Source: Caecitellus pseudoparvulus
Taxonomy: Eukaryota > Protista > Bigyra: Bicosoecida
Length of the DNA stretch: 64,000 bases
NCBI GenBank assembly: GCA_965644315.1
Contig: CBFFRQ010000054.1
Location: forward strand, 124,001 to 188,000
Direction: 5' to 3'
Below, one piece after another: positions 14,765 through 46,434 of the stretch. Each line of letters begins with the position of its first letter. The stretch's first letter is position 1. A program made the position numbers and the translations under genes. Under the pieces are notes generated by a model, which was not told the DNA's origin, made no database searches, and saw only the letters and a program-made list of their open reading frames with translations.

Positions 14765-17241
14765 ATGGCAGCAACAAGTCACCGACCCCACCCGCCCCCA
14801 GCGCCTGCGGCGCAAGGAAATCCTTGGAAGGAGGCAGCTGGGCCGATAATAGTCGTGTTTGTCGCACTTGCCACTGCATGGCTGTCACTTGATGCAGGTG
14901 TGTTGGAGGGACTGGTCAGAGGCCGGGAACCAAGGTGAGGCGCTCCGGACGCTGCGCCGTGGGCGTCTCCAAAGGACAGCCACTTCCTCATGACCCATGC
15001 AGAGGTGTTCACATGGACTATGCCCCTCTGCTACGGTTTGCCTTCCCCACCAACGGATCAACCCTTGACCTCGGGCTGGCTGCGCCGCTGCGCCTCATGC
15101 ACGACACCTCAGTGCATTTTTGCAACCGCACCTGCGGGCAGCAAGCCACCCCTGCGCCACCCCTGCTCTTGTGCCACTCAAAGGCACCATCTCAACGAAC
15201 TTGTGAGCACCTGCCTTGCTCCGCCTTCACCACGCTGCAGGTGCCAGCGCCCACCATGGAAGCAGGTGTGCACTCGCTGGAGCTCGACATTCCATCTTGC
15301 TCCGGAGAGCTGCAGCGCGTGAGCGTGACATACAATGTGACGAAAAGCACTGCCCCGGAGCTCTGTAGTTCAGCAAGATTTGTGGATAGTGCCTGTGCTG
15401 CAGAGGAGGCCCAACAGGCATCTGTCGCTCACGGGCTGCCAAGACGAGTTCTTGCTGCAGTGCTCAGCGACCCGAGGGATGCCAACGGCCGACGCTCTGC
15501 ACGGTCCACATGGGCACAACCAGCCCTGCAGCTGACTGTAGTCTTCGTGCTCCCACGCAGTGCCCTTGAGTCACCCCAGGGAGTAGCGCTCCGAGCGGAA
15601 TCAGCTGAGCATGGCGACCTGCTGTTCGTGAACACGCCAACCATGAGAGTCCCCATGCTCAGCGCCTTGCAAGCCCTTGGGCGCGGGGGAGTGCCCAGTC
15701 GCCCTGATTTCGTTCTCATTGTGCCGTCTGACATGTGGGTAGACATGCCGAGGCTGCTGCATCGACTGGCGACGGCACCTCTGCTGCGGTGGGCGGCATG
15801 TGCTTCGGTAAACCCAACGGCTGGGCCGTGTGCCCTGTCAGCAGACCTAGTTCTGAACTGGCCCCCTGGTGTGGTCGACTTCTGGAGTGGCCTGACTGCT
15901 GTTGGGGTGCAGGTGCAGGGTCTGGGCAATGCCACAGCACAGTGTCCGGTGCGCGTGTCGGAGGCAAGTGGGCAAGCGTCCGCCATGCATGGGGCAGACG
16001 ATGGCAGCTTGGAGGATGCCACTGCGGCACACTGCTCCATGGCAGCCAGCGATGATGCCAAGGGTGCGCTTGTGCAGGCTATGGGCGTGTGCAAGCGTGC
16101 TGGGAGTGCGGCGTTCCACGCAGCGCATGCGCCGTGCAGCTCCCCCCACGCGCTGCAACATACGCCCAACTTGAGCAAGCTGCTGGGGTCACACGGCCAG
16201 TGTGTTACGGGTGAGGGGCCAGGGACGTTGTTGACAGTGTTCACGACGCTGGCCATGCCGCCACCGCCACACAGAACCCAGCAGCAGCACCAGAAGGCTG
16301 CCATTCATCGCAACACGATCAGGGCCTTGGTTGCGCTGCGGCCATGGGTGGCTGTGGTGGTGTTCGTGGGGGACGCGCACACGGCAGCTGCACTGGAGGA
16401 GGAAGGCGTTGCGGTGGTTCGAGAGGGGTTCCGACTGTCCCCCATGGGCATCCCGTACTTGAAGGACATGTACGGGTGGGTGGAGGAGCACAGTCGAGCT
16501 CCCATGCACGGGTACATGAACGCGGACATCCTGTTCGGGCCAGGCCTCGTGGATGCAGTGGATGTCGTGTTGCGCAGTGTGATGCAGGGGGGGCTGTCAT
16601 CCAGACTGCTCCTCACTGGCCGGCGCTACAATGTGCACATGCAGGATGCCGCGCAGGGCAAGGAGGCTGTTGGTCACCTGGCCCGCAACGAACCCCTGGG
16701 CGCAGCGGGGGCTTTTCACGCACACCTGTGCAAATCTGCTCGCAGGTTTGTGCCAGGCGCCCTGGACTACTTCTTCATCACCCGTGGCTCCTGGCACTGG
16801 CCATCCATCCCGGACTTCGTGCCTGGCCGACACTCGTTTGACCTGTGGCTCGTTGATCATAGCTTCCGTGATGATCTTGACCGCGTGGACATCAGCGAGG
16901 TCACGTGGCCCCTGCACCAGTCGGAGCAGGCACACGACCCAGTCGGATCTGCAACGTCAACCATGGACTATGATTTTAATCAGCGCGCCATGGCTCCCTT
17001 CATTGGCGGCATCGCGCGTGGTACAGCCGAGCATGTCAATTGGAAGCTGGTTGCCAATGCGGGTGGTGCGATGCAGCTTCGTCCAGGGCCACTGCCCAGT
17101 CGCAGTGGAGGCTCTGGCCCGCCTTGGACGGGCCTGAGATTTCAAGGCCACATCGACCCGATTAGCGGCCAGCGTCTGCTTTGTTCTGACGAGCAGAACC
17201 CAGGCCATCCACATCTCGTCTGCGAGTACGTCCGAGGTTGA
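14765..17241 (+). CDS. Modular type-II membrane glycosyltransferase, paralog 1 (TM anchor, Ig-like module, degenerate GT31-like domain, GT-A 'NADILF' domain); intron 14935-15002
   Basis: Exon 1 encodes the anchor IIVVFVALATAWLSL and splices in phase to the 768-aa ORF. RRSARSTW..VVFVL..ESAEHGDLLFV is Galactosyl_T-like. GYMNADILF..TGRRYNV..DYFFIT..W..IPDFVPGR..DLWL is a GT-A-type domain. Confidence 0.7.
15392..16620 (+). repeat. Dispersed direct repeat, copy A (~1.23 kb), ~96% identical to 44732-45960
   Basis: Ungapped alignment at offset 29,340 with about 49 mismatches by hand count. A second 70-nt island, 16765-16834, matches 46102-46171 at 69/70. Confidence 0.97.
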
Positions 17242-17270
17242 CCCGTAACGTTCCCCAGTTGCCCTGCGTC

Positions 17271-20200
17271 CAGGGTGTCCCAAATGTAAATTTTACAAGG
17301 TGTTTTTACATACACGCCTTTACAAGGCTTCGGGCGGCTCCATTTTTGTAAAAAATTACAAGGAGCTAAATCACCACAAACGCGTTTTTCTCACTTTCTA
17401 ACATCCCTGCCCACCTCTGCTAGCCATAAATGCGTGATATCTACCCTTTGTTTCCCCCTTGCGCTCCGCTCTGGTGCGTGCCGATGCCGTTCGTGAAGCT
17501 CCGCATGACGCGCTGCGGATTTTGCAAGCTGGGTAAAGCTGTAACCTTTACAAGCCTTGAAGCGGCCCACAAGGCACTCTGCGCCGCGCCCTTCTAACAG
17601 GCAGGACAAGATAGCTTATAAAATATGCCTGTGGTGCCAAATATTGTGCAGGGGATGCCGACCGCGGAGACTGTGGGGGACAGTGACTCAGCGTGGGTCA
17701 CAGACACGCCTGGCTTCACTTGCCAAGAATGCCGCCCTGCTATCGTCCAATACTTTGACAAAGCTGGCCCCCCGTCCAAAGCAGAGCTTTGCCGCTAAGT
17801 GGGCAAGCTTCTGCTATAATAAACGCAGTTCCCAGACGCCGGCATTGAGATGTTTCCCTTCTTCGCCCTGGCGTCCAAGCACTAAAAAGCCTCAGGGAGG
17901 AGGCCCAAGCAAGCTGTCCCGGACTGCATCACGTGCACGGGAAAAAGGGTGCGATTGGCTAAGCGTGAGCTGGCCATGTACTGCGGGTACACTGCTGCTG
18001 AGTTCACCACTGCCAACCGCCGCGGGCGGAGCGTGTGGCAAATGACAGAGGCCAAGAAGAGGGAGCTGAGGTCCAGTACCGGGGTGGCATCAGCGGCAAG
18101 CATCGTCCGCAGGGCTGCAGCGGTTGGATCCAACGCAGATCGCGTTGATGACGCTGGCATCGCAAAGTCCCACCTCATCATGATGGGCACAGCTGCAGGG
18201 CTCAGTGTGCGCTCCATCGCTGAGTTCATGGGGGACGATGCAGTGGAGCTCCTGGGCATGACCACCGACAGCACCAGCCGGAGCACCGTTCATCGTGTTG
18301 CATTGCAGAATGGCGAGCGTGTGCGAGGGTGGATCAGGCAGGAGCTGAACAACCCTGACAACCGCGACACATTCATCAGCCTGTCCATGGACTGCTCGTC
18401 GTACAACAATGAGCCAGTGACGTTCATCATGTGCAGCTGCCCTGGAGTCTTCGCTGGGAGGCCCGTCTTGTTGCGCTGCTTCTGCCACCACGACCACAGC
18501 CGCGCCGTGACTCTAGCTGAGATGATTTTGCAGACGCTGTATGAGTACGCAATCGAGCCATCCCGCATATCTGCCATAGTGAGCGACAATGCCAGTGTGA
18601 ACATTGCTGGTACGCGGCGCCTTCGTCACTTTGCCTCGGCAAAGTCAGCCCTTGTTGGTGCTGACGCCGGAGATGTGAGCGAGGCGCGCCTGACGGAGCT
18701 TCTGCAGTATGCCACTCTGAGCTGGAACCTGTACGCTGAGCATGTACTGGAGGAGAGCGCAGAGGACGGAGCTGGTGTGCAGGCTGCCCCAGCTGCCGCA
18801 CCAGCTGGGGGGGATGCTCCTGCTGCTGGTGCCTACACCCCTGCGCCAGGGCCAGCAGACGATGCGCGCGCCACCGCTGCATCGACAAGGCTGCAGGAAA
18901 CGAAGCAGTACATCTCCCGTGCTCCAAGCAGTGACAAGGTGGCCGGCCAGGCCGTGGACTTGGCCGTGTACACGGAGGCCGAGCACAGCGCGCGGCGTAG
19001 CAACCTGCGTAAGTGGCTGCACAAGAAGGGCGTGTCGGGATCTCTACAAAACCTCAGCAAGCTTCTGCACGTGGGCTGCTTCTCACACTCTCTGGCTCTG
19101 ATGGAGAAGGCCGTGTGCTCGCACTTTGGGTACACGTGCGCATCCCTAACCACCCTGCACTCAGTCCTCTGCAGCGCGCACAGCCGCCAGCGCCGGCAGC
19201 GAGCGCGGCAACTTGGAGCGTACGCTTCCCAGCTGAATTTCTGCGAGACCCGGTGGGGTACACGCACTGCTGCACTGGGCAAGGTGCTACAGCTACGACA
19301 GCGGCTATGTGCGTGGCTGGAGGAGGAGCTGCGGCGGGAGCACCCCAACCGGGACACCGCCTTGAAGATGGACCTGCAGCGGACGTTGAAGTGGCTCAAG
19401 AACACCAGCTTTATGGCGGAGGCCAAGGTCATGTTCGGCATGTGCTCCATCATCAACTCCTGCGTGCACGCGGTGCAGGCAGACGCTGTCAGCGACGGCG
19501 CGCTGGCCAGTGTGCTAGAGATCGGCGACAAGCTGGAAAACCTGTGGCTCCTGGAGGACAACGTGAATATGGCCGTCCGTGCAGCTTGGGCATCCTTCTG
19601 TAGGCCTGGAACTGAGTACATGGAGGGCGACGTGCATGCCCAGCACCCGCATGCAGCCAGCCGTGCCCAGCAACGCCGCATGGAGCTGGCCGGCACTGCG
19701 AAGGCTGCTGCTCGGAGCGGCCTGCACAAGTACAAGCACTACATTCAGCGGTGGCGTGGAGTGCTGAGGATCAGGCACATCCTGCAGGCAGACAAGGACA
19801 TTGGCGCTGCCATCCGTGGCAAGTTCCCCCTTTCTGAGCTGGAGCAAGGCGTGGAGGCGCTGCCTGGGCAGCGCACGCGACTGCTTAGCGAGGTGCTGGC
19901 GGGTGTCTTCCCCAACCCCACCTCTGCTGTACCGTACGGCCCCGCTGATGTATCTGCTTTGAACGCCGAGTTCTTCAGCTTCATGCGCTCTGCTGCGGGA
20001 GCGGGGCAGGGGGCGTCTCCGCTGTGGCATCGCCTGGATGTGGTGGCAGCGGCCCGTGAGCACCCAGCCCTGGCCTGGCGCAAGTTGCGACGGGAGTTTC
20101 CCGTGATGGCTCGCATTGGTGAGGCGCTGTGGTGCATCCCGGTTACCAGCACTGACGCGGAGCGCGCCTTGAGTCGTCTGACGCGCATGGAGAGCAACAA

Positions 20201-20636
20201 ACAGATGAGCAACAGCGGGCAGGTCTGGCTGCACGCCAGGATGATGGTGCTCTGCAATCGCGACTTGTGCACGTCCATGAAGGAGCGGTTCCTTAGGAAG
20301 CGCCGCCGTGAAGCTGCTGCCGTCGCGGATGCGATCTCGCGCGCGGCTCGAGCGCGCGCAGAGGTTGCTGGGAGTGGCTCACTGCGGCGTGCATTTGCAG
20401 CTGCGGGCGGCATGGCTCGCCAGCAGCCTGCTGAGGGTGAGCTGGGTAGTGCTGCAGGGGCTCCAGGCAAGCGCCCACGTAGAGAGTAGCCACCATTTGG
20501 GTGCATTTGCTCGCAATGCATGTGAGTGACTGAGACCAATTTGGGGGGTCAAAATTTGTAAATTTTTACACGAAAACCCTTTACAAGGTACCCTAAAATG
20601 GCCTTTACATGTAAAATTTACACTTGGGACACCCTG
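17271..20636. mobile_element. hAT-superfamily DNA transposon, 3,366 bp, apparently autonomous
   Basis: TIRs CAGGGTGTCCCAA(A/G)TGTAAATTTTACA at 17271-17297 and 20610-20636 (26/27 match), with the 5'-CAG terminus typical of hAT. AT-rich subterminal TTTACA(AGG) repeats at both ends and an internal hAT transposase. TSD is imperfect. Confidence 0.93.
17949..20489 (+). CDS. hAT transposase (5' end uncertain; first in-frame ATG at 17976, possible upstream exon)
   Basis: Catalytic D (SLSMDCSS), D (AIVSDNASVN), CxxH (CFSHSL), TRW (ETRWGT), and hATC region with E (W..LRREFPVMARIG..LWCIPVTSTDAERALS). Basic NLS-like C-terminus. Confidence 0.92.
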   Translation: MRLAKRELAMYCGYTAAEFTTANRRGRSVWQMTEAKKRELRSSTGVASAASIVRRAAAVGSNADRVDDAGIAKSHLIMMGTAAGLSVRSIAEFMGDDAVELLGMTTDSTSRSTVHRVALQNGERVRGWIRQELNNPDNRDTFISLSMDCSSYNNEPVTFIMCSCPGVFAGRPVLLRCFCHHDHSRAVTLAEMILQTLYEYAIEPSRISAIVSDNASVNIAGTRRLRHFASAKSALVGADAGDVSEARLTELLQYATLSWNLYAEHVLEESAEDGAGVQAAPAAAPAGGDAPAAGAYTPAPGPADDARATAASTRLQETKQYISRAPSSDKVAGQAVDLAVYTEAEHSARRSNLRKWLHKKGVSGSLQNLSKLLHVGCFSHSLALMEKAVCSHFGYTCASLTTLHSVLCSAHSRQRRQRARQLGAYASQLNFCETRWGTRTAALGKVLQLRQRLCAWLEEELRREHPNRDTALKMDLQRTLKWLKNTSFMAEAKVMFGMCSIINSCVHAVQADAVSDGALASVLEIGDKLENLWLLEDNVNMAVRAAWASFCRPGTEYMEGDVHAQHPHAASRAQQRRMELAGTAKAAARSGLHKYKHYIQRWRGVLRIRHILQADKDIGAAIRGKFPLSELEQGVEALPGQRTRLLSEVLAGVFPNPTSAVPYGPADVSALNAEFFSFMRSAAGAGQGASPLWHRLDVVAAAREHPALAWRKLRREFPVMARIGEALWCIPVTSTDAERALSRLTRMESNKQMSNSGQVWLHARMMVLCNRDLCTSMKERFLRKRRREAAAVADAISRAARARAEVAGSGSLRRAFAAAGGMARQQPAEGELGSAAGAPGKRPRRE

Positions 20637-20836
20637 AGCCTGCGCCGTACTTCCCAAACTCCAACCAGCAAATAATCGTGATTCTGACAGATAAGCGGGG
20701 AAGCACGCCGCTTTTGTTGCCAACTTGTCCAGGCGGGCGCTCTGCGCCAGACACAAGCTGTCCGGTTTTTGAGGCGGAAGTAGTAGCTTTGGCTTCACTC
20801 TCAGGCCTCAGATTTCCTGCGCGCGGATCAGTCCAA

Positions 20837-21916
20837 ATGAAATTCGTGGCTTTACTTGTTCTCAGCACAATCTTTAAGCGCTCCTTTGGTGCAGTGTTCG
20901 CTCAGCGACTCCTGGGGCAGGAGCGTTGGATTCCGCCTGGTTCAGTGTCTGCGCAAGCGCTCGCAACGCAACGCCAATGGTTCAGGCCCGTGCCCCACCT
21001 GGACGATAAAGAGCCGCTGAGTATCGACCCCATTGCTCATATATCAATATCCAGTGCAGTCAAGCCGTTCATTTCCCATGGCATGCCAGGCCGTGTTCGA
21101 GAGCCGAGCGTCTCGGCGGAGGCTGGCGGCCTCGCAGCTCTGCCCGGCACAGGGGCTGTGAGCTTGGACAGCGTGGCACAGCAGCTGTGCCCAGTGGGGA
21201 TCCAGATGGATGCCAACGAAGTTGAGCAGATGGAAGTGTGGATGGCTGAGGGCGCCGCTGCCCACAATCGCACGAAGTTCACATCTCTACACCTGGAGTG
21301 GGGGACGGGCGGGTCAACCATCCACTCTGCGCACCGAGCAGGGCACGTGGCAGGCATCGAGCACCACCCTGAATGGTGCGCCATGGTCACTCGCTGCTTG
21401 CAGCACATGGCGTGGGAGCACGTCACTTTGGCATGCGCCCCACATGACTCGACCCAGGCTGACTTCAACGTCAACGCTCCCACCTTCCGCCTCAACGAGG
21501 GCAGTTTCCGGGCCTTTGCGAACTACGTCAACACCCCATTTATGCTACCATGGCCTCAAGGTAGCGATTTCACTGCGCTCGACAGCATACTGGTGGACGG
21601 GCGAGCCCGCATCGCATGTGCCCTGCGAGCATATGCCTTCATGGACATGGGTACAGTGCTCATGCTCCACGACTCCAACCGCGAGTACTACACAACACGC
21701 CTGGCACCGTACTTTGACTTCGTCAAGGAGAGGGACTGCACCTTGCCGGCCCGGGGCATTTGCAGACTGCGCCCCTTGCCCCACCTCGTCGGGAGAGTGC
21801 TGCCTGAGTCATTCATCGCAGCCGTCGCTGACTTGCGCCAGTTCTCAGTTGGAGAGCCTCCGCTGCCGCTACCACCCCCCCAAGAGATGCCCTTTTTGGT
21901 GGATATTATTGGATAG
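20837..21916 (+). CDS. Secreted/Golgi class I SAM-dependent methyltransferase, putative glycan O-methyltransferase
   Basis: Signal/anchor MKFVALLVLS; motif I HLEWGTGGST; GIEHHPEW; DSILVDGRARIACA; LMLHD. The ORF-track start at 20624 lies inside the TIR and is not credible. Confidence 0.72.
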   Translation: MKFVALLVLSTIFKRSFGAVFAQRLLGQERWIPPGSVSAQALATQRQWFRPVPHLDDKEPLSIDPIAHISISSAVKPFISHGMPGRVREPSVSAEAGGLAALPGTGAVSLDSVAQQLCPVGIQMDANEVEQMEVWMAEGAAAHNRTKFTSLHLEWGTGGSTIHSAHRAGHVAGIEHHPEWCAMVTRCLQHMAWEHVTLACAPHDSTQADFNVNAPTFRLNEGSFRAFANYVNTPFMLPWPQGSDFTALDSILVDGRARIACALRAYAFMDMGTVLMLHDSNREYYTTRLAPYFDFVKERDCTLPARGICRLRPLPHLVGRVLPESFIAAVADLRQFSVGEPPLPLPPPQEMPFLVDIIG

Positions 21917-22188
21917 TGCTAATACTTTGCCCCATTCACGCAATGCAGAGGTGAATGCGCCGTAGTCGAGGGCAATCCACCAAGAAGGCGCCGCTTTGCC
22001 GTGCCTGCGCGCGCCACTTTGCCATGCCAGCCAAAATAGGACACGTACCGCGAAGAATACTTTCGTAATCATCAAGTTGAATCCTAAACTTTACTAGTGG
22101 GGGGTCTCAGGCTCTCGGGGCTTGTACATGGCCGTGGCCTGTGCACGAGTTTCGCGTGAAACGCTGGGCTCCACTTCTCTTGCTCCTA

Positions 22189-24742
22189 ATGGAGGCCAAG
22201 CGCACGACATCACGCATTTTCTGGCCAGTGCCCTGTCCAGGATCTGATCAGTCTGGTTTCTTGATCGGATGGAATGTGCAGGGCTTCACAGCGTGTGTCG
22301 CGGGGGTGCTGCCCTTTGAGTTCGCAGAGTTGCCTGCGCTGGATCACGCGATTGGTGAGGAAGGCGCACCGCCTGCCTGAATGCCTCCGCTGAGAGCATG
22401 CCTGTGTTGCGCAACTCACAGCGCACATGAAGACCAACCCTCGCCTCACTGACATGGTCAAGTACTGCGGCTGCAGCCTCGTCGTGCTGGGCGAGTGGCA
22501 AGCCTCGCCTGGCGCAGAGTCCGCCGCTGCCCAACCACCTCCGGGCGTCGCAGCACGAAGGCAAACAGCGAACTTGTGGCTGCGCATGTCGTCAGCTGGT
22601 CCAGGTCGGGCACCACAGCCCACGCTCCGATCCCTGCATTGCTGTGGAAACCCTTTCCAGACTGCCCCTCACGTGGTGTTTTGCGCGCCGCCTGACCCAA
22701 CCCGCATGCAGTACCTCGTGCCGACGCTGAGGAGCGCCACTGGCACAGCACGCCCCGCCTCTCCCGCAAAAGTGCGACCCAAGTCGCCCCCCACGCCGGA
22801 GCAGCACCCTGGCAAGCCTCGGCGTGTGCCTGTCGCATTCGGAGCCAAGAACCGCACTCGTGACGAAGCCAAGCTGCCGCCACCCAGCACCAACGCGCCC
22901 CCCCAGGATGGAGGAGGGGCGTCGGTGCGACCCCTCCCATCAGCTGGGCTTAGTGAGCTGGAGCACTGCCTAAGGCAAGTGAACTCTTCCGCCCACGTTC
23001 TGGTGTACTTGCTCGCAGCCCTGCGGCAGCCGACCAGGCGCCTGCCCGACATGAGTCCGCCAGTGACTGGCTGCCGCAGTACCGACCCGGCAGAAGTCTT
23101 GCAGGAGGTGCAGGGTGTCGGAACGTGGCAGTTTGCTGTCATGGCTGGCGCAGAGTGCGCGGCGGCGGCCGCGGGCGAGGTGGCAACCCACCCGACCCAC
23201 CAACCACGCCACAACTGCTGCTTGCGTGGGGCGGCTGCTGTGGTGTTGGCGTGGTTGTATGTTTTGCGCTTGCTTGTGGGCGGCGTGCTGGCTGTGGTGA
23301 ATGCCCAGGTCCCAACATGGCTCCCCTGCTGTGCGGGGCGGTCTCTGCGCCACGTCAGCGCCACTTCCGCCCAGCTGGACCGCCTCGGCACGCAGCTCCT
23401 GGTGTGGCCCGGCGTCATCCAGGCGTCCCGCACGATGAACAGCCACTGGCGCCTGGCGCGGCATCGTGTGCAGCACCACGTCGCAGCCTGGGGCAGCGTC
23501 AGCTTGACTGTGCTGGATGTGGCCGTGGGCATCATCACGGGGGTCATGCTGTTCACCGCCGTGTCACAGCCGGCGTCTGGACTGCTTGCTACCGTGCACT
23601 ACGTTGGGCGGCTCCTGCACATGGATGTCTTGCGCAGTAACATTCGTTGGCTGTCCCTCGTGCCGGCAGGCTTGAAGCTGAATGCGCCGCTGGCCAGCCA
23701 GCTGTCACACGTTGTGCTGGAGCTGCTGTCAGCGTGGAACAGCATCACAACATTCCTGACGCCCCTTGAGCCCATGATTGCCGTGGTTGTTGCTTGCTCC
23801 GGCATTGGAGGTTGCTCCCTCATGTTGGCCGTGTGCAGTGACGTTCTTGGCATCATCACTCTGCATGTGCGCCTGCTTTACATGGCATTTGCGACGGCAT
23901 GGAACACCCTGCTGCGCATCGCATACTCTCTCTTCTTGCTCTTTCGTGGAAAGAAGTACAACATATTGCGCCTGCGAGTGGACAGCCTGCAGTCCGACAC
24001 GGCACAGCTGCTCATGGGTGTGCTGCTCTTCAGTGTCGTGGCACTGCTGCCCACTCTGGGCGTCTACTACGCCTTTTTCGTCATTGTGTGGGGGCTGGTG
24101 CTGGCACTGCAGGGTTTCTTGTGGTGCGCGATTGCGCTGTTGACACGTTTCCCGCTGTACGGACTCATCGTGCGAGCGCTGGACCCTGGCTGCATCCCCG
24201 GCGGCATTCGCGTGCGCCTGTGCGGACCAGACGGCCAAGACTGCGACCTGTCCAAGCTTGGGGCAGGGTCAGCAGCCACACCAGCAGGCGGGGTACCGTC
24301 TGACTCACCTGCGACACCCCCCAGCAACCCCCACGCAACGTACATTTGGCTGCACTCCCACGGAGCGCCCCCTTCCGTGCTGCTCGCATCGTACACTGAT
24401 ACACTCAGTGCGGTGGTTGGCAAGCATTACGCCCCTGCACGCGTCTTGCGGGGTGCCCTCACAGGCGGCGGCATCCCGCTTGCGCCCCAAGCCACGTTTG
24501 ACCGCCTGCGAGACAGCACCCCTGCCAGCCGCCACCTGAGCATCCCATCCCCGGCTCACTTCATCCGTGCCCTGCAGGAGCTGTTTGAGTTGGTGCGCAG
24601 CGAGGACGATTGTGGCGGTGTTGTGCCGCTGCAGCTTGCAGGGCGGCGACAGGCATCTGGTGCGGACTGCGACACGCCGGACAGCGAGGGTAGCCCTGCG
24701 CCCACCACTAGTGGGCAGGATACCCACGCCAAGGTGGAGTGA
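22189..24742 (+). CDS. PIGQ: GPI-GlcNAc transferase subunit PIG-Q/Gpi1; intron 22355-22421
   Basis: N-terminal RIFWP..GFLIGWN..CVA exon spliced in phase 1 to the long ORF. Gpi1 core WLSLVPAGLKLNAPLA..SLFLLFRGKKYNILRLRVDS..QLLMGVLLF..LLPT..YY. Confidence 0.93.
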
Positions 24743-24970
24743 GTGGGTGTAACATGCAGCTTCGACTTAATGCACTGCTTTATTTGAACGTGGGATTCCG
24801 CCCGTCCTGCCCGGGGCGAAGCAATCAGGTGCTTGGCCCAAACCATCTCACCGCGACGCATGTTGCTGCAGCGCTGCAGGACTCCCCATCCCAGAAGTAT
24901 TGAGACGATCTTCATGCATTGAACTTGTTGATTCTACCCAGCACCAACGCAAAGGCCCGCATCTGAGACG

Positions 24971-26419: not shown

Positions 26420-26559
26420 AGTCAAAAATGCCTCAGCTACAGACCTTCCTGCCTAAATCTTGAATCTTGCTAATGCATGCAAGCGTACCACAGTCAACGC
26501 AGATGTCCAGCGCCTTCGACGTGCACCATCCTGCCGCAACGCAGCAACGCACTTCCATC

Positions 26560-30215: not shown

Positions 30216-30219
30216 TGGC

Positions 30220-31737: not shown

Positions 31738-32347
31738 GGGGACAAAATGTACTTCCTTTCCCGCCCTCTGACCCGCAAGGTGCTGGGTGGAGTGCACTTG
31801 CCTGGTGGCCGGCTCAGTGGGCAGCAGCAACAGTCCCTGGCGGCGGAGCTCCTACACGTGTGCTCACCAGAACGCGGTGAGGTACAGAATGGCTCTATGA
31901 AACCGTCCAGTGTTCGCGCAGCATTGCGACTCATCTGGCGCCTTCTTGGTGGGAGGGAATGTGACTGTCTGTGTGGACGTCCACTTCGCAGCTTGATGTC
32001 AAAACCCAGAGTATGCACGATAAGTCTCAGAAATCTCATGGGATCACTTATCACGGGCTACGCTGCCCCCCCAGGCCATTCGTGTCGGTGTGGGTGCAGT
32101 TTATGCTGCTGCGCCGCAGCAACGCACGCTCAAATTCCGGTTTCCGCAGGTGCCCGCTTGGTCCCTGGCTTTCTCAGCTTCCACGAGACACGAAACCCCA
32201 CCAGGTCAGCTCCGTGTATCGTAAATAGCCATTTAGTCCGAGTCGTCGCGCGCTTTTCTGGTTTCCGCTTGCCTTCCAGTGCGGTGCGGGAGCCAGTCAT
32301 CGACGGAGGAGGCCAGGCAGCAACCGCACTATTGCGCCGCCGCTGCA

Positions 32348-36886: not shown

Positions 36887-37321
36887 CTACAATACCTCTC
36901 CACATGAGGTTGTGTGTGTGGAGGAGCGTGTGTGAGGCAGGGCGGGCAGGCGTGGGTTGCTCTGCGAAGAATAGAACTGGGTCAGTTGTGCCAAAGTATG
37001 CTAGACCTACTGTTTGGAAGGAAATGCACGTGATCTTTCATCGTCTGTCGCGGCGCGGTTCCTTTTGTCTGCCAGCCACCGCCTGTGTCATCCTTGTCCT
37101 TGCAGCCAGCGGCACAACTGTTGCTGATCGTGCAGCTGCCCAGAGCTATCCAAAACAAAGTGAAACGTACATGGTTGTGCGAGTTAAAAGTGGATGACAG
37201 GATAAGGCCTGTTCCGGACTGCGATTGTGAAGCGCTTCCCCCAGTTCAGTTAGCCCACTGTGTTGTTGTGCTACCAAATTCCGCAACCCCGTGGTTGGGT
37301 CGTGTGAAGCCCCCACCCAGC

Positions 37322-37483
37322 ATACTTACCTGACGTGGGCGACTGCGGGCTCAAGTAGCCGCAGCCCTGGGGGGGAGCAGGGCTTGCACGCTGGCTTGTC
37401 CAGTGCTGCTGTAATCCCTCATGGTAGTACGTCTTTGACGGCTGCCACGCGTAGACTTTTTGGAAGTACGGCCGAATGGCCAC
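37322..37483 (+). ncRNA. U1: U1 spliceosomal snRNA
   Basis: Starts ATACTTACCTG. Helix H ACGTG/CGCGT; SL1 CTGCGG-[GCTCAAGTAG]-CCGCAG; SL2 with TTGCAC loop; SL3 TGGTAGT-CGTC-TTT-GACG-GCTGCCA; Sm site ACTTTTTG; SL4 GGCC..GGCC. Length ~162 nt. Confidence 0.92.
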
Positions 37484-37536
37484 AAACAAACTCAAAAGAA
37501 CGAAATTGTGAATGTCGACATACATTACAAGACAAC

Positions 37537-38605
37537 CTAGACACTCAAGCGCAGCCTGTGCATGAGGCTCTTGACACTTTCGTCAGCAGGCGGAATGGTG
37601 AGGGGCTTTGCTGCGCAGAGAAGCTTGGTCACATCGAGCTCAGTGTTGGAGCGGGGGGCCTTCAGGATACGGCTCTGCTCTTCCTCTGAGAAATTGGTCC
37701 AGGTGAAGGCAGGGTCCACTACCTGTTGGTACTGCTGCAGGATGAAGTTGTGCGTGACGGTGCCAGGGTTGGTGAAGTTGAAGGTGCCAGTGCTGCCCTG
37801 TTGCACCAAGTGCACCGCCACAGGCAGCAGATCATGCAGCACAGAGACGCTGTTCGGAATGTTGACTACTTTCTCGTACTTGGTGAGTTTGGTGAGGAGG
37901 CTCCGGGGGTGCAGGTCGTCGCTGAGCGGCATGCGCAGGCGCAGGGTGAGCGTGTTGGGGAACGCCGGCAGTGCCTCCTCGACCATAGCCTTGGTGTGGG
38001 AGTACCACGACCCTCTGAAGTTGGGGCTGTCTGCCTCCGTGAAGCCTTTGCCTGTCGCTTGTGGGTGCTGTGCATCGTAGGTGTAGATGCAGCCTGTTCC
38101 AAAGTATGTGCAGTGCACGCCTCGCTCGTGCGCGGCTTGCAGGACGTTCAACACGCCTTGCACGTTCACCTTGAGCACCTCTTGCTTGTGGTCCTCACAC
38201 CAGTCAACGTTGGGGCGGCCAGTCTGCGCGGGAGGGGTCTTCAGGTGGCAGCGCCGGGCGTCGGTCCCTCGCGGGGAGTCGGCAGCAACGCACCAGCCCG
38301 GCTGCAATGATGACTCGTTCAAAGGGAGCGCTGGCCAGCTCGCTGGCAATGCAGGGGGAAGGGGGGGCTGTCCTGTACTGGTGTGCGTGCCCGTAAAGGC
38401 TTCCAACTCACGCTTCCACGTCTGCAGCCTTCTCCATGCGTGCCTGCGCGGCAACTGGAGTGCAGCGTCCTCCTTCAGCGCTCAGGTGCATGAGCTTGCG
38501 ACCAATCCAGCCAGTTTTGCCGCCATAGATGAGCCAGAGAGGTTGAGCTACCTTCTCTGACTTGGTACCGAGGCTCTCACACGCTGGGCCCTCCTCAGCA
38601 GCCAT
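37537..38605 (-). CDS. NDP-4-keto-6-deoxyglucose 3,5-epimerase/4-reductase (NRS/ER, UER1; L-rhamnose synthesis); introns 38343-38411 and 38224-38293
   Basis: WLIYGGKTGWIG..ARME..|ELASAPFERVIIAAGL|TGRPNVDWCEDHK..NVQG..GTGCIYTYD..GFTEADSPNFRGSWYSHTK..LRLRMP..KYEKVVNIPNS..APRSNTELD. Confidence 0.94.
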
Positions 38606-38858
38606 TTGAGCGACTGGCGTGCAGGCGCCAATTTCCGCGCCGAGGCGCTGCAGGCTTTGAGCTTGTCGCGAGGATGAGCTGCCTCGGGCAAATCACTTAA
38701 ATCTAGAGCACAGCAAGTCGCACTGACACACAGCAGAAAGTGAAGATCAACTGAGTTTTGATCTGAGTGCAGCAGCAGTGCAAGATGGCGGTGTCCAGGG
38801 CCAACAGTGCAAGTGGTCCGTGCTCCTGGCGTTTCATGCAGGACAAGCCGCGCCTGGT

Positions 38859-41800
38859 ATGAGTAATCTGCCCTCCATGCGACTCGCAGAAACTATTGCA
38901 CACGCAAGGGGGCTTTATACTGCTAATCAGTTCCACCAATGCGTCGCCGTTTGCCAAAAGGTGCTGCAGGGCGTCGCTAGCGTGCCTGGCATGGCTGTGC
39001 ACCAGCGTTTCGTTTTCCCTGCACAGGCCACAGAAACTCTGGGCCAGCACGCCGAGGTCCTGATGCTGCAGGGTGCCGCGCACTACCACATGCAAATGTT
39101 TGCGGAAAGCATTGCCTGCAGCAAGCGTGCTATTGAGCTGAATCCGTCCTTGAGCCGTGAGTGACGCTGGCCCTGCGCTGCCATGCCGCTCACCTGGCAC
39201 GGCACCCGTTTCCCACATACAGCTGCGTATAACAACCTAGGCAACGCTCTGCGGGCCAGAGGACACACTGACTACGCCGTGCATTGCTTCGTGAAGGCTA
39301 TCAGGTTGTGCCCCACGTTCGCAATGGCGTACTTCAATCTTGCCGGGGCGCTCCTGGCGCAAGGCAAGATCATGCACGCCATTGACATGTACCGCACAGT
39401 GCTAGCGCTGCAGCCTGGCATGATGGAGGCCTGGAGCAACTTGGCCCTCTTGCTCATGCACCGGGGGGACAGCGCCGGCGCGAAGGAGTGCTGCCTCCGC
39501 GCAATCAAGCTGCAGCCATCAGCTGCCATTCCCTGGTACAACTTGGCAGCGCTGCTGAAGGGTCTGGGCGACGCCCACACCGCCTTGCAGTACTACCGAG
39601 AGTGCTTGCGCCTGGCACCCGACTATCCTGAGGGGTGGACCACGCTGGGCAGTTTCTTGAAGGAAGCGCACAACATCCCGGAGGCCAAGGTAGCGTACGA
39701 GCGCGCACTGGCGGTGAGGCCCGTGTTCCCTGTGGCCCTGGGGAACCTTGCCAGCTGTCACTTTGACATGGGGGACATGGACACGGCAATAGGGCTGTAC
39801 GCCAAGGCGCTGGAGCAGCAGCAGGTGTTCCCAGACGTCTGGAACAACCTTGGCAACGCGTACCGCGAAAAGGGGGATCTGAAGAGCAGCATTTATTGCT
39901 ACCGCTCTGCGCTGCAGCAAGCGCCACGACACCCCCACGCATACAACAACCTAGGGAACAGCCTGAAGGACATTGGGCACATCCAGGAGGCCATCCATTG
40001 CTACGTCACTGCCTGCAACATAATGCCCAACTTCGCGGCCGCCCACAGCAATCTAGCGTCTGTGCTGAAGGAACAAGGGGAGGTGGGCCTCGCCATTGCC
40101 CACTACAAGCAAGCACTGGCCGCCGACCCGACCTTTGCCGATGCCTGGTCCAACTTGGGCAACACGTACAAGGACCTCGTGCAGCTGGACGACGCCATCG
40201 TTGCGTACAGCACCGCTGTGCGCCTGCGCCCCACGAACGCCGACGCATGGTCCAACCTCGCGTCTGCGTACAAGGACAGTGGGCGCACCCTGCAGGCCAT
40301 CGTCGCGTACGAACAAGCGCTGAAGCTACGACCCGTGTTCCTGGACGCCTTTGCAAACCTCGCACACGCTCGCATGCTCATTTGCGACTGGACCTCCCGC
40401 ATGCAAGATTTCGAGACTGTCAAGGCCCACATGGCAACCCAAATGGAGGCAGTGCTGCCAGGCGGTGCCCAACCCAACGCGTATGCGCCACACGGGCGCC
40501 TGCCTCCTGAGGTCGCGGCAGCGCAGAGGCTGCCCGCCAACCTGCCCCACACCGCAGCCAGCATCCCGGTCCTGCCCTCCGTGCAGCCATTCCACTCGTT
40601 GGTGTACCCACTTTCACTGGCTGAGATGAAGCGCCTGGCGCAGTGCTACGCTCAGCGCGTGGAACGCAACTTGTTGCTGCTGAAGGACAAGCCTGTATTC
40701 ACGCCGCCAACGAAGGGCGCTTGGGAACGCCTCCGCGTCGGCTACGTTTCGTCTGACTTCGGGAACCACCCCCTGTCGCACTTGATGCAGTCCATCTTCG
40801 GCATGCACAATCGTGCGCGGTATGAGGTGTTTGGCTACGCGCTGTCCCCTGACGATGGCTCCCAATGGCGCCGCAAAGTCGCATCCGAAATCGAGCACTT
40901 CAAAGACCTGTCGGCTGTCGTGGCGCCGGGGGACGCGGCCAAGATCATTGCCGCTGACCGCATTCACATCCTCATCAACTTGAACGGGTACACGAAGGGG
41001 GCCCGCAACGAAATCTTTGCCTTGCGCCCTGCGCCCGTGCAGGTGAGCTACATGGGCTTCTGTGGCACGACGGGGGCGCCGCACATGGACTACTTCATTG
41101 TGGACGAGTCTGTCGTGCCGCGGTCCCTGCGGCAGCACTACACAGAGGCGTTGGTGTTCATGCCACACTGCTACTTTGTCAACGATCACAAGCAGTCCGC
41201 GCAGATCGTCCTGAACCCAGCCATGCGTCCCACGCGTGCCCAGTACGGCCTGCCAGAGGACAAGTTCCTGTTCGCCAACTTCAACCAGCTGTACAAGGTC
41301 GAGCCTCGGACGTTTGCCGTGTGGTGCCGCATCTTGCGGGCCCTGCCCAAGGCCGCTCTGTGGCTGCTGCGGTTTCCGCCCGCCGGGGAAGACAACATCC
41401 GCGCCGCTGCCCGTGCCTTTGGCGTGCACGCAGACCAGATCGTCTTCACTGACGTGGCGCCCAAGGAGGAGCACCTCCGCAGGGGGGCCTTGGTGGACCT
41501 GTTCCTGGACACACCTGCCTGCAACGCCCACACAACAGGCTGCGACATTCTGTGGGCTGGGACGCCGCTGCTTACCGTGCCCGGCGAAAAGATGGCCAGC
41601 CGCGTGGCAGCGTCCTTATTGAATTCCATTGGCCTCACCTCCTGCATCGCCGACTCCCTCGTCGCCTATGAACAGCGTGCCATTGAGCTGGCTTCCTCCC
41701 CCAAGCTGCTGGCAGAAGTGCGGGCGCACCTGGAGTCAGCACGCCACACGTGGCCGCTGTTCGACACGGCGAGGTGGGTGCGCAACTGCGAGCAAAGCTA

Positions 41801-42401
41801 CGACAGCATGTGGGCGCGGTGGGAGGCGGGGCAGCCGCCCGCCGACATCACAGTGCAAGACGTGAGCGGCACTGCCCCCATCGCCCCAGTGCAAACCATT
41901 GTGCGGGATCCATACACGCTGCGTGCCGGCGAGGTGGCTGACGCAGCAGGGGACGTCGGTGCAGGCGGCACGGCTGTGCACACTGAATTGCCGCCAGAGG
42001 TCATGGACGCCGAGGGCATTGTCTCCCGGTACATGCAGCGGCACCCCGGCACAAAGAAGCCGACACTGGAGAGTGTCGTGGTGCAGCAGCCCACCGTCCC
42101 GCTTGCCATGGCAGCTGCAGCGGGGGCCATGCCGGCACCCACCCCCCTCGCCACTCGCGTCATGGCTGGGCACTTTGACCCTCGGCAGGTGCAGCTGGCT
42201 CAATATGGCGCAGCTGCCCACGCTGGCTTCATGCCGGCCCAAGCGCACGGCATGCAAACACAGCTGCAGAACATGGTCATGCGCCAGCAGCAGGGCTTCA
42301 CCTTGCCGCCTGGCGTCGCTGCTGCTGGCATGCCAGGCCACCAGCCTGTCGTCGTCGGCAGCCACCATGACATCGCCGCAGCACGGATTCAGGGAAGGTG
42401 A
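38859..42401 (+). CDS. OGT: O-GlcNAc transferase (GT41, OGT/SEC type); introns ~38961-39026 and 39157-39222
   Basis: About 13 TPRs (NNLGNA..), then PSVQPFHS, RLRVGYVSSDFGNHPLSHLM, INLNGYTKGARNEIFALRPAPVQVSYMGF, NFNQLYK, LWLLRFP, CNAHTTGCDILWAG, ASRVAAS. Confidence 0.97.
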
Positions 42402-43705
42402 CCAGGTGACGTGGCAACGGCCGGGTCACATGTTGCGGCCTTGGTGCCTTTCTCGTGGGCGTGCGAGGCGTCGCTCGTGATGACACCGTCTGTCTCCGCC
42501 AAGAGCTGAAGCATGACTTTTGCCCGTTCCTCTGCGATGTTGCTCTGCACGCCCACGAAATGCACGATGTTCCCGCCATCGTCCCGCAGAGCAGCACAGA
42601 AGAGGTCGTTCCAGAAAGGCACGCCAGCCTTGGAGTAGTTCAAAATCACACACCTGCAATCCTGCCCCGCCGCGATCGCCGCGGAGAGGCGCTTCACGGT
42701 GGCGGGGTTTGTGTGCTGCCCCTGCATGAACCGGCAATTGTGACCCAGGATTTCCTGGGGCGTGTACCCGGACAGAGCATAGAAGCCGCTGGACGCGAAC
42801 ACGATGGGGTTGTCCGGCAGTGTCGGGTCTGTGATGATGAAGTGCGTCTGTGCAGACGTCACGGACGACAGCAGAGCTTGGTCGCTTCGGGCCAGCTGCG
42901 ACGACGCTGGAGTGGGGGAGCCGGCGGGCGGCGGCAGGGGGACATGTAAAGGGAATGGATGGAGAGCAGCACTGGGGTCCTCTCCCTTTTCACAGGCCGC
43001 TTTGGCCGCGCAGGCTGCACTGCTCTCGCTGCCGTCCGTGCTCGCAGTTTTGTTCATTTCGCTCTGAGAGCCAGCGCCAGGCAGGCAGCAAGTGCCCACC
43101 GAATCTTGCTGGCCCTCCCTCACCTTTCTCAGACACTCTTCCCACTGCTTCGTCAATCCCAGAGAAGCTATCATGTCCAGTATGATGCTGTTCTCCTTTT
43201 CTGTCCTCTCCACGGTCGCAATGAGGCCATCCAGCTGCAAGAGGCCGAGGCGGAATTTGATGCCAATCATTGCACGGGCGCCAGCGAGCAGCCCCGCCTC
43301 ACCTCAATTTTCCGCCGCTGCCTGGCTTTCCTGGCATTCATTCTGTTCCATTCCTTCCTGCACTCCCACGAAATGCCGCCCGGTGCGTCAGCTGAGCGAG
43401 GCACCGCATGTGCGCGACGGATTCAAGCAACTCATGCCACATACCTACGCTTCGAAGCTGCCTCGGGTCCCTCATCCAAGTGATCTGTACCTGGCGGGCA
43501 AAGCAGACCGAAGGTGCGTGGTTTTAACGTGCTTGAGCCGCGATTCAGAACGCTACGGCTTCGCGCGATGGCGTGAGCCACATCATCAGGCAAGCATGAG
43601 GCGGGCACAACTTCACTTCCCGCTGGCCAGCTCACCTTCCTCCAGGCTTGCCCGAAGCTCAAGCCGCTGCAGCTCCAGATCAGAGGCCCGTTTTGAGCTG
43701 CTCAT
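42389..43705 (-). CDS. Aureochrome-type bZIP-LOV blue-light receptor/transcription factor; introns 43491-43635, 43358-43444, 43235-43302 (possibly one more in the linker)
   Basis: Splicing reconstructs the bZIP SKRRKEWNRMNARKARQRRKIE|LDGLIATVERTEKEN. LOV domain FIITDPTLPDNPIVFASSGFYALSGY..ILGHNCRFMQG..LNYSKAGVPFWNDLF..HFVGVQ retains the photoactive Cys. The most 5' exon is less certain. Confidence 0.9.
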
Positions 43706-44151
43706 GTTGAATTCTAGGGGCACATAGTCGGGGTTACCTCTGCGCCGGCTGCCCAGTTGCGGTGACGAAGCTTTTTGAGTTTTCGTCGCCGATGCGAGCT
43801 GCGTTTCATCTGCGTTTGAGCTGGCGCAGAGCCCTCCTTGGCGCCCTCACTAGAGTAGCGAAATCAAAACGCAACAGGTGGAGACCCGGAACCTGAGACA
43901 CTGTTACGTTGAGGTTTCGAAGTAGCCTTCCATTTATTGCCTAGGTCGTGAGTTACGCCCTGTGGGCTTTGGCGGTATGGAGTAAGCAGACAGCCGTCTT
44001 CCTGCGCATTTTGCAGGCTTGGAGTAGCGCGCCTTGCATGGGAGACTTGGGTTCAATGCAGTGGTGTGCGCCTTTGTTATCTGAAGGCCCTTGGATGAAC
44101 CTTCGCTCCTAAGGCACTCGCCGAGAAGCCACTTGCACAGGGGTGCTGGCA

Positions 44152-46434
44152 ATGGGCCACCATAGAATGGACTCCAGGAGCAGCAGCTTGCCGACCCTTT
44201 CCTCGTACAGGGCTGCTCTGCAGTGCTGCCTGATACACGCCCTCCTTTCTTGTTGCACTGGTTTTCACGAGCCAGCATCGCCAGCATCGCCAGTGTCGCC
44301 AGCATCGCCAGTGTCGTCCGAGCGTGACCCTGGCCTCTCCGCCCGCATTCCACGGGCTCTCAACAAAGCAAGGACTGCGATCTTGATTGAGCCCCGAGAC
44401 CAAAGCACCTGGCGACGGAGCACCCCCATTCTATTGCAAGGCAGGTGTCTTGTCGAACAGGTAGAGGCGGCAGTCGATTCCAACACAATCACGCAACAAG
44501 AGATCTGCATCTTTCCTGAACAAGCCAGTGCAGCACCAGAGGCGACATGCGAGCCCATTTCAGCGCCGCAACTTGAAAGTGGTCGTGTGCGCCTTACTGA
44601 CTTACAGCCTGCTGAGTACGTTGCGCAGCTTCGATGCGGGGCAAGCGCAGAGGAGTGGACCCAGCACACCTTCACTGTCGTGGAAAGCAGCCCACCCAAG
44701 TTCCACAGCCCAGCGATGGAAATGGACGCCTCCTGTGCTGCAGAGGAGGCCCAGCGGGCAGCTGTCGCCGACGGGCTGCCAAGACGAGCTCTTGCTGCAG
44801 TGCTCAGCGACCTAGGGGATGCCAGCGGCCGACGCTCTGCACGGTCCACATGGGCACAACCAGCCCTGCAGCTGACTGCAGTCTTCGTGCTCCCACGCAG
44901 TGCCCTTGAGTCACCCCAGGCAGGAGCGCTCCGAGCGGAGTCAGCTGAGCATGGCGACCTGCTGTTCGTGGACACGCCAGCCACGCGAGTCCCCACGCTC
45001 AGCGCCTTGCAAGCCTTTGGGCGCGGGGGAGTGCCCAGTCGCCCTGATTTCGTTCTCATTGCGCCGTTTGACATGTGGGTAGACATGCCGAGGCTGCTGC
45101 ATCGACTGTCGACGGCACCTCTGCTGCGGTGGGCGGCATGTGCGTCGGCAAACCCAACAGCTGGGCCGTGTGCCCTGTCAGCAGACCTAGTTCTGAACTG
45201 GCCCCCTGGTGTGGTCGACTTCTGGAGTGGCCTGACTGCTGTTGGGGTGCAGGTGCAGGGTCTGGGCAATGCCACAGCACAGTGTCCGGTGCGCGTGTCG
45301 GAGGCAAGTGGGCAAGCGCCCGCCATGCATGGGGCAGACGATGGCGCCTTGGAGGATGCCACTGCGGCACACTGCTCCATGGCAGCCAGCGATGATGCCA
45401 AGGGTGCGCTTGTGCAGGTCATGGGCGTGTGCAAGCGTGCTGGGAGTGCGGCATTCCGCGCAGCACATGCGCCGTGCAGCTCCCCCCACGCGCTGCAGCA
45501 CACGCCCAACTTGAGCGGGCTGCTGGGGTCACACGGCCTGTGTGTTACGGGTGAGGGGCCAGGAACGTTGCTGACAGTGTTCACGACACTGACCATGCCG
45601 CCACCGCCACACAGAACCCAGCAGCAGCATCAGAAGGCTGCCATTCACCGCAACACGATCCGGGCCTTGGTTGCGCTGCGGCCATGGGTGGCTGTGGTGG
45701 TGTTCGTGGGGGACGCGCACACGGCAGCTGCACTGGAGGAGGAAGGCGTCGCGGTGGTTCGAGAGGGGTTCCGGCTGTCCCCCATGGGCATCCCGTACTT
45801 GAAGGACATGTACGGGTGGGTGGAGGAGCACAGTCGAGCTCCCATGCACGGGTACATGAACGCGGACATCCTGTTCGGGCCAGGCCTCGTGGATGCAGCG
45901 GATGTCGTGTTGCGCAGTGTGATGCAGGGGGGGCTGTCATCCAGACTGCTCCTCACTGGCGAAAGGCACAACGTGCGCATGTCCTCCGGTCTGTCACCTT
46001 CCCACAAGCACAGCCTCCCGCTTGGTGCCGGCCTGCGCGCCACCGAGCGCCTCCATGCCTCTCTTGCGCCGCATGCTTGGGCTTGGAACCCATATGGGTA
46101 TGACTACTTCTTCATCACCCGTGGCTCCTGGCACTGGCCATCCATCCCGGACTTTGTGCCTGGCCGACACTTTTACGACCCTTGGCTTGTGACGCACTCT
46201 CACGAGTCCGGCATGGTGCGGGTAGACTCCAGCACGTGCAGCTGGGCCATTCACCAGACAGGCGTTGATGGTCATCGAGCGTGGGAGAGTCCAGATCGGC
46301 CGATGCGAGATTTCAACGTTGACGCGGCGCGTGGATACTCCGGGGGTGGCCTGTCCGACGCTCTGCTAGAGACTTTCACTTGCGCTCTTTGGTGTGAAGG
46401 TGGCGCGGACGCTACATTGAGCGTGCAGTGCTGA
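44152..46434 (+). CDS. Modular glycosyltransferase, paralog 2 (same architecture as 14765-17241)
   Basis: Hydrophobic N-terminal segment, Ig-like module, degenerate GT31-like domain, NADILF GT-A domain. Central 1.23 kb is near-identical to paralog 1. Confidence 0.72.
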   Translation: MGHHRMDSRSSSLPTLSSYRAALQCCLIHALLSCCTGFHEPASPASPVSPASPVSSERDPGLSARIPRALNKARTAILIEPRDQSTWRRSTPILLQGRCLVEQVEAAVDSNTITQQEICIFPEQASAAPEATCEPISAPQLESGRVRLTDLQPAEYVAQLRCGASAEEWTQHTFTVVESSPPKFHSPAMEMDASCAAEEAQRAAVADGLPRRALAAVLSDLGDASGRRSARSTWAQPALQLTAVFVLPRSALESPQAGALRAESAEHGDLLFVDTPATRVPTLSALQAFGRGGVPSRPDFVLIAPFDMWVDMPRLLHRLSTAPLLRWAACASANPTAGPCALSADLVLNWPPGVVDFWSGLTAVGVQVQGLGNATAQCPVRVSEASGQAPAMHGADDGALEDATAAHCSMAASDDAKGALVQVMGVCKRAGSAAFRAAHAPCSSPHALQHTPNLSGLLGSHGLCVTGEGPGTLLTVFTTLTMPPPPHRTQQQHQKAAIHRNTIRALVALRPWVAVVVFVGDAHTAAALEEEGVAVVREGFRLSPMGIPYLKDMYGWVEEHSRAPMHGYMNADILFGPGLVDAADVVLRSVMQGGLSSRLLLTGERHNVRMSSGLSPSHKHSLPLGAGLRATERLHASLAPHAWAWNPYGYDYFFITRGSWHWPSIPDFVPGRHFYDPWLVTHSHESGMVRVDSSTCSWAIHQTGVDGHRAWESPDRPMRDFNVDAARGYSGGGLSDALLETFTCALWCEGGADATLSVQC
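44271..44315 (+). repeat. Coding 9-bp tandem repeat GCCAG(CA/TG)TC x5 (PASPASPVSPASPVS)
   Basis: Directly visible: gccagcatc gccagcatc gccagtgtc gccagcatc gccagtgtc. Confidence 0.9.
44732..45960 (+). repeat. Dispersed direct repeat, copy B, ~96% identical to 15392-16620
   Basis: Line-by-line match to copy A. Confidence 0.97.

Follow-up and report, generated by a model that had tools for sequence, protein, structure and literature searches.

The window analysed here, a 64,000-nt stretch of the Caecitellus pseudoparvulus genome (contig CBFFRQ010000054.1, positions 124,001 to 188,000), carries two linked glycosyltransferase genes, paralogs 1 and 2 (P1 and P2), which alternate along their length between near-identity and deep divergence. 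The P1/P2 mosaic is real and is not a misassembly. Identity at synonymous sites showed that gene conversion has acted on a 1.2-kb scaffold and on a 70-nt island common to the two genes. Repeated ectopic gene conversion, combined with selection that keeps the divergence peaks, is the probable explanation for the mosaic as a whole. The process itself is already known, and P1/P2 is an unusually sharp example of it in a GT-A family that has no name.

Mosaic of identity and divergence between P1 and P2

The two genes lie in direct orientation 29 kb apart and form the one long repeat detected in the window by self-BLAST, at a constant offset of 29,340. A third, more distant family member is referred to as paralog 3 (P3). 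The features are listed below in coordinates of the window.

14765-14934, plus strand: predicted exon 1 of P1, with Met, a short cytosolic tail and a hydrophobic anchor resembling those of type II Golgi enzymes.
14935-15002, plus strand: predicted GT-AG intron of P1, 68 nt, which joins the hydrophobic anchor from the upstream exon.
15003-17241, plus strand: exon 2 of P1, with a Cys-containing N-terminal module, degenerate GT31-like domain, linker and GT-A domain.
15392-16620, plus strand: converted scaffold, copy 1, covering the degenerate GT31-like domain, linker and nucleotide-binding half of the GT-A domain.
16519-16527, plus strand: DxD-type motif of P1 (N-A-D), within scaffold copy 1.
16621-16764, plus strand: unconverted segment 1 of P1, model residues 166-213, the putative HV2 loop, helix and G-loop position.
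16765-16834, plus strand: converted 70-nt island, copy 1, residues 214-236, a core strand and the loop up to the catalytic-base helix.
16835-17241, plus strand: unconverted segment 2 of P1, with D239, H264, HV3 and the C-terminal tail.
16840-16842, plus strand: D239, invariant, the putative xED base, in P1 segment 2.
16915-16917, plus strand: H264 (C-His), in P1 segment 2.
44152-46434, plus strand: P2, a single open reading frame with a hydrophobic N-terminal stretch; its GT-A domain keeps all five invariant residues.
44732-45960, plus strand: converted scaffold, copy 2, in P2.
45961-46101, plus strand: unconverted segment 1 of P2, 141 nt.
46102-46171, plus strand: converted island, copy 2, in P2.
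46172-46434, plus strand: unconverted segment 2 of P2, lacking the C-terminal tail of the family.
53494-56724, minus strand: P3, a distant family member and no donor, with its nearest relative a copy on contig C100.

Alignment of P1 and P2 confirmed the mosaic that a first-pass annotation of this DNA had described, with ~96% ungapped identity over 1,229 nt, abrupt breaks and an island matching at 69 of 70 positions. The scaffold copies (15392-16620 and 44732-45960) differed at 49 of 1,229 positions, corresponding to 96.0% identity without a gap, and identity was lost abruptly. The single difference between the island copies (16765-16834 and 46102-46171), at position 16818, was synonymous. The N-terminal modules had been called unrelated, and indeed no alignment between them rose above shuffled controls. 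Synonymous difference (pS) between P1 and P2 was 0.062 in the scaffold (20/323 sites) and 0.07 in the island (1/15), compared with 0.78 in segment 1 and 0.76-0.77 in segment 2; the variable segments are saturated at synonymous sites. In other pairs of family members whose island peptides are similar, island pS was 0.39-0.77, and constraint on the protein is therefore no explanation for the identity of the P1 and P2 islands (binomial P about 1e-4 for 1/15 if pS is 0.55). This was as the annotation had argued, and its proposal that the scaffold is homogenised by patchwise gene conversion is likewise supported by the synonymous-site identity. Differences within the scaffold were clumped, with an identical run of 159 nt (P = 0.007) and 10 differences among the 94 nt at its start (P about 0.01), both P values being post hoc. 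They were also skewed, with A/T in P1 and G/C in P2 at 32 positions and the reverse at 13. The skew is unexplained, with private mutation on P1 and GC-biased conversion as candidate causes.

We also compared P1 with contigs (Logan) from four public sequencing runs (X1, X5, X10 and X11), in which no single contig covered the whole of P1 or P2. Contigs from X10 and X5 traversed each P1 junction, namely N-terminus/scaffold, scaffold/segment 1/island and island/segment 2. In X11, contig 20 ran without a break from the scaffold through P2 segment 1 and the island into P2 segment 2; the same run had a loose end at 15392 that matched the P2 N-terminus. Both architectures and all four breakpoints recurred in the independent runs X5, X10 and X11, and a 144-nt replaced stretch at 16620-16765 was observed in all four runs. 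The P1-unique DNA of other strains was mostly 4-14% different from this genome, and X1 matched its P1 over 15237-15451 without a difference. Strain variation in segment 1 was small (2-3/204 nt for P1 and 0/141 for P2).

The annotation had further placed P1 nearer to P3 than to P2 in the divergent segments, on motifs that proved to be hand-picked. Amino-acid identity in segment 1 was 0.28 for P1-P3, 0.30 for P2-P3 and 0.26 for P1-P2, and identity to P3 after C-His was 0.22 for P1 versus 0.24 for P2. The only stretch favouring P1-P3 was the 30 codons 3' of the island (0.57, compared with 0.40 for P2-P3). Over the same codons family members on contigs C100 and C13 were equally near P1 (0.57), and the likeness therefore reflects retained family consensus. 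P2 retains consensus motifs lost in P1 (the H.S.P.G loop and G270 of TGxDG), and the converse also occurs. Divergence at synonymous sites was high throughout: pS to P3 was saturated in the divergent segments (0.73-0.80), pS between P3 and P1 or P2 was 0.64-0.80 outside the short island, and pS of the variable segments to all other family members was 0.53-0.93.

The trees of scaffold and variable segments differed in branch lengths. P1 and P2 were sisters at 100% in the scaffold tree, with tips of 0.00-0.02, and had the longest branches in the variable-segment tree (1.30 and 1.75 substitutions per site; other tips 0.07-0.36). The variable-segment topology was without resolution, and the approximately unbiased (AU) test rejected none of three topologies, including P1 with P2 and P1 with the P3 group. 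Collected by a scan of the genome, the family comprised six members (a lower bound), each with an open GT-A frame; the scan identified no fragments and no donor for the variable segments, which matched nowhere else in the genome (counts again being lower bounds). Length-limited word searches found no further P1/P2 alleles, and a scan of JGI metagenomes found only distant relatives (38-43%) and no P1/P2 orthologs. These comparisons mark the variable segments as old, rapidly evolving sequence and not as recent imports.

Predicted fold and position of the unconverted segments

P1 and P2 probably encode Golgi type II proteins. Exon 1 of P1 (170 nt, phase 2) is in frame with exon 2 by frame arithmetic. 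A profile search identified at least 3,154 relatives among 50%-identity clusters, and neighbours in the Atlas were unnamed or GT2-like, many of them viral or bacterial. No Pfam match was found for P1-P3 or for the family alignment, and no PDB sequence match for the family (145 aligned members). AlphaFold models of the catalytic domains had a pLDDT of 88.5 and pTM of 0.90 for P1 and a pLDDT of 94.4 for P2. The best alignment of the P1 model was with chondroitin polymerase 2z86 (Z 13.2, root-mean-square deviation 3.4, 211 residues), and its best Foldseek and VIA matches were GT-A enzymes together with nucleotidyltransferases that share their fold. The modelled catalytic domains of P1 and P2 were thereby shown to have a GT-A fold. 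The family resembles known GT-A glycosyltransferases in its GT2-like fold and in having an N-x-D motif, a later Asp and a His in the expected order; it differs in the N-x-D motif itself and in matching neither a Pfam family nor a PDB sequence.

Acceptor specificity in the GT-A common core lies in HV2 and HV3, with the G-loop, the Asp of xED and C-His belonging to the active site (PMC7185993). Five residues (N132, D134, G165, R167 and D239) were invariant in the 145 sequences, and D214, G234, R235 and H264 (99%) were nearly so. The metal motif is a variant N-x-D (N132-x-D134) instead of D-x-D, and D239 opens a helix (238-248) in the P1 model. Judged by the order of strands and conserved residues, the scaffold would represent the half that binds the nucleotide and carries N-x-D. 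HV2 and the G-loop position would then fall in segment 1 (166-213), and the core strand and loop that follow them in the island (214-236). Segment 2 would start with the D239 helix, bearing the catalytic base (xED), and extend over C-His and HV3. The unconverted segments are probably acceptor-side elements of a GT-A enzyme. The annotation had read them as likely acceptor-specificity loops; on the modelled fold their place on the acceptor side is probable, and the correspondence to individual motifs is more provisional.

The middle domain, within the converted scaffold, is by its sequence at best a degenerate GT31 relic. The match of copy 2 to PF01762 was below threshold (E 0.049, 13.8 bits, cut-off 23), and its acidic DDD motif reads P-S-D or P-F-D. 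Nonsynonymous difference (pN) between P1 and P2 in this GT31-like part was 0.052 and pS was 0.050, indicating almost no constraint. The catalytic part of the scaffold had a pN of 0.007 and pS of 0.077, indicating purifying selection.

Probable recurrent conversion and selection, and alternative explanations

We propose that P1 and P2 arose by an old direct duplication of a GT-A glycosyltransferase gene, and that the scaffold (1.2 kb) and the island (70 nt) have since been homogenised by repeated rounds of ectopic conversion. Conversions that overwrote the acceptor side would mostly have been purged by selection, as the two enzymes would do different jobs. The unconverted segments would thereby have diverged to saturation, and may now also resist recombination. 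The outcome would be two enzymes with a common donor-nucleotide and metal site and a different acceptor or linkage, with neither programmed machinery nor a donor library involved.

The number of events was addressed by the positions at which P1-specific contigs ended. The differences in this genome predict an end at 15515 and a restart at 16788; the observed end was at 15420/1 (X5 and X10) and the observed restart at 16805 (X1, X5 and X10). This shift implies that P1 and P2 agree in those strains at 15414, 15416, 15421 and 16818, where this genome differs, and thus 4/4 testable P1/P2 differences were not fixed across strains. Because these sites are the entry and exit points of contigs, their agreement is not an artefact of bubble removal. 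The non-fixed differences and the clumping of differences in the scaffold favour several events, and we infer that more than one conversion took place.

The alternative of one recent, discontinuous conversion is unlikely. Such an event would have replaced both scaffold and island in one of the old paralogs, probably P2, with the sequence of the other, and the skipped parts would reflect patchy repair and at most one selection filter. It would account for the same pS in scaffold and island (0.06-0.08), the sharp edges, the low strain diversity of P2-unique DNA in one sample (0/141 and 4/263), and the 32 versus 13 skew, which fits private mutation on P1. Against it are the non-fixed differences and the clumping, and it needs strand invasion between genes otherwise only ~60% identical (P1-P3 scaffold pS 0.64, pN 0.29). 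A metagenome scaffold that carries parts of both genes (L034) shows a block pattern of eight consecutive P1-type sites (P = 3e-4), which also favours several events, although assembly mosaicism is possible in it.

Conservation across the family bears on the role of selection. Family-wide conservation was 0.60 at residues 166-171, 0.55 at residues 237-266 and 0.58 in the island, compared with 0.39 in the scaffold. Residues 166-171 and 237-266 are indel-free yet unconverted, and the relaxed GT31-like domain is converted. Homology-limited erosion should lose poorly constrained DNA first; the opposite was seen, and selection is, indirectly, favoured over erosion. Neutral erosion, in which conversion came to a halt once homology was lost through indels or random divergence and agreement with the active site is a coincidence, is accordingly a quite improbable account, despite documented edge erosion of converted blocks (PMC2588116), the 3-nt indel between P1 and P2 in segment 1, and the poor conservation of the segment 1 core (0.16) and HV3 (0.34) across the family, where both are also prone to indels.

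The sister subfamily comprises C100 and two sequences from other samples that are alleles or close paralogs (L037 and L038). Amino-acid changes in it were found at 8/14 positions beside the G-loop and 17/50 in HV3, versus 11/125 in the scaffold (P = 5e-5, G-loop versus scaffold). At four-fold sites the 3' half was more diverged than the 5' half (P = 0.002-0.02). In this P3/C100 subfamily (L015:1812-2753, L037 and L038) the acceptor-side 3' half is the older one, and variation lies beside the G-loop. The L037 copy adjoins a multicopy repeat, and its flanks differ from the C100 locus.

Several points weigh against recurrent conversion shaped by selection. The pN/pS ratio in the variable segments was <1 or saturated and never >1, and positive selection was not directly seen. 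The converted island is only 70 nt long and is set between heterologous blocks. The HV2, G-loop and xED mapping follows strand and residue order, not superposition. New mutations on the P1 of this genome, arising after one recent event, could account for the four non-fixed sites. X10 contained a single 1,229-nt contig over the scaffold, at a depth below the sum of both loci. This contig was rejected as proof of 100% identity in that strain, as single-base bubbles are popped in assembly, and all scaffold bubbles of this genome are short enough to be popped under the bubble size limit of the assembler. Finally, a related species carrying both orthologs was not found.

The annotation had suggested that segments are kept or exchanged, with P1 likened to P3, and that this could diversify surface glycans combinatorially, for example against viruses or grazers; read as a system, cassette exchange would shuffle active-site segments among family members. 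We consider such a system very doubtful. It draws on two observations, of which the first concerns X1. No contig in this run lay on P1 segment 1 (16621-16764), though P1-unique DNA was present on both sides. An unbroken 453-nt contig comprised 242 nt of scaffold, the 141-nt segment 1 of P2 and the island, and P1 segment 2 branched from its end. This pattern may represent a P1 allele converted across segment 1, a natural recombinant; contig cleaning or filtering is a possible alternative, depth was equivocal, and a contig gap alone proves nothing. The second observation is L034 (1-4361), which joins the P1 5' end, through a blocky scaffold, to the P2 3' end and downstream gene (protein P0007). 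L034/P0007 was not accepted as a natural chimera, as a real deletion would lose GPI1, an SMC and OGT, and the join probably arose when the assembly was routed through the repeat. Against cassette exchange, there was no donor copy among the six members, no synonymous trace of exchange with P3 and no breakpoint motif (a simple scan found no 6-mer common to all four junction types within 30 nt), and the P1 segments in X5 and X10 and the P2 segments in X11 and L034 were arranged as here.

A collapsed or chimeric assembly is barely conceivable even though a 1.2-kb near-repeat is prone to assembler error, of which L034 is probably a case: P1 and P2 are distinct at 49 sites, their catalytic part is under purifying selection, and misassembly is very unlikely because independent-run contigs (among them X11 contig 20 and the X1 match over 15237-15451) cross each junction of both loci in differing strains.

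Known systems, implications and genomic surroundings

In its sequence pattern P1/P2 most likely corresponds to the known divergence peaks under interlocus conversion. Such peaks, the subject of the Teshima-Innan model, are known from the human red/green opsins and RHD/RHCE (PMC3924837), and the Drosophila transporter pair CG18281/CG17637 has two of them (PMC2588116). As in these cases, P1 and P2 are nearby duplicates that have been homogenised, with sharp divergence islands at presumed functional sites, and as in the Drosophila pair two peaks are split by a converted stretch. The P1/P2 peaks differ in being saturated (pS about 0.77, 18-43% amino-acid identity) and in filling half of a catalytic domain in one exon, with a converted gap of only 70 nt. 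The linked enzyme paralogs GOT1p1/GOT1p2 of the copepod Tigriopus californicus also have exonic divergence islands amid conversion, and in some populations conversion has erased an island and left chimeric alleles (PMC3728101), as X1 may show for P1. Differences within the copepod islands amount to tens of residues at most, and no indel is fixed in them; P1/P2 is far older. The H. pylori genes futA/futB were considered as a further precedent and set aside, as the publication consulted gives no record of conversion between them.

P1/P2 also shares with donor-cassette systems a constant framework with variable blocks and the involvement of gene conversion. In trypanosome VSG, Neisseria pilE/pilS and Borrelia vlsE, a single expressed site receives variable parts copied from numerous silent donors. 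In P1/P2, by contrast, it is the constant part that is copied, between two intact genes and without a donor library. Recent exchange of variable segments, which marks donor-cassette systems, was not observed, apart from the unconfirmed case of X1, which concerns P1 and P2 only. A limited literature search found no report of stramenopile glycosyltransferase mosaics of this sort.

The conversion boundaries mark, almost to the codon, those parts of a widespread GT-A family that probably set specificity, and the P1/P2 pair is a ready-made swap experiment for that specificity. If the X1 recombinant is real, it would connect polymorphism caused by conversion with variable glycans in a marine flagellate, and the idea of new combinations would be partly rescued as ordinary conversion polymorphism. 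A further extension, to which we give only a small chance, is that conversion sometimes crosses segment 1, and that recombinant alleles (P1 with the HV2/G-loop segment of P2), together with the deeper 3' divergence of the sister subfamily, reflect a selection-maintained pool of acceptor sites that varies surface glycans between strains. Such a pool would allow glycan change from strain to strain, for example under virus pressure, and would serve as a natural domain-swap map, showing where specificity resides in this uncharacterised GT-A family.

The gene content of the window is eukaryotic (dynein, GPI1, SMC and OGT), in a genome of 30.6 Mb that is intron-poor, and near-identical DNA is present in marine sequencing runs. 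The best named matches of OGT were stramenopile proteins at ~57-60%, and a relative of OGT at 79% (P0166) points to a sister species. The region 14000-58000 has ~60% GC, compared with 65-70% on either side, and its glycan-related genes are the three family members, GPI1, OGT and a PF03407 transferase at 51177-52172. P3 bears an additional C-terminal domain of ~300 aa (53494-54420) with a D-D motif, which is glycosyltransferase-like by eye and has no Pfam match. Close relatives of genes of this genome (L038; P0001 and P0152), one of them in the same 90% cluster, were found in an assembly labelled Symbiodinium sp. KB8 (GCA_905221625.1), which suggests a passenger flagellate in that assembly; marine metagenomes also contain close copies.

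Two further observations concern the ends of P1. The stretch covering exon 1 and the intron (14751-15030) shows deep allelic polymorphism, ~15% by eye against L034, beside ~270 identical bases, and a strongly diverged allele of the intron stretch is present in L034 and in runs X1 and X5. At the other end, a hAT transposon (PF05699) with terminal inverted repeats (17271-20636) is inserted 30 nt past the P1 stop. It lacks a clean 8-bp target duplication and has a shorter relative (90-94%) on contig C189. The insertion site was empty in X5, X10 and X11, and both states were apparently present in X1.

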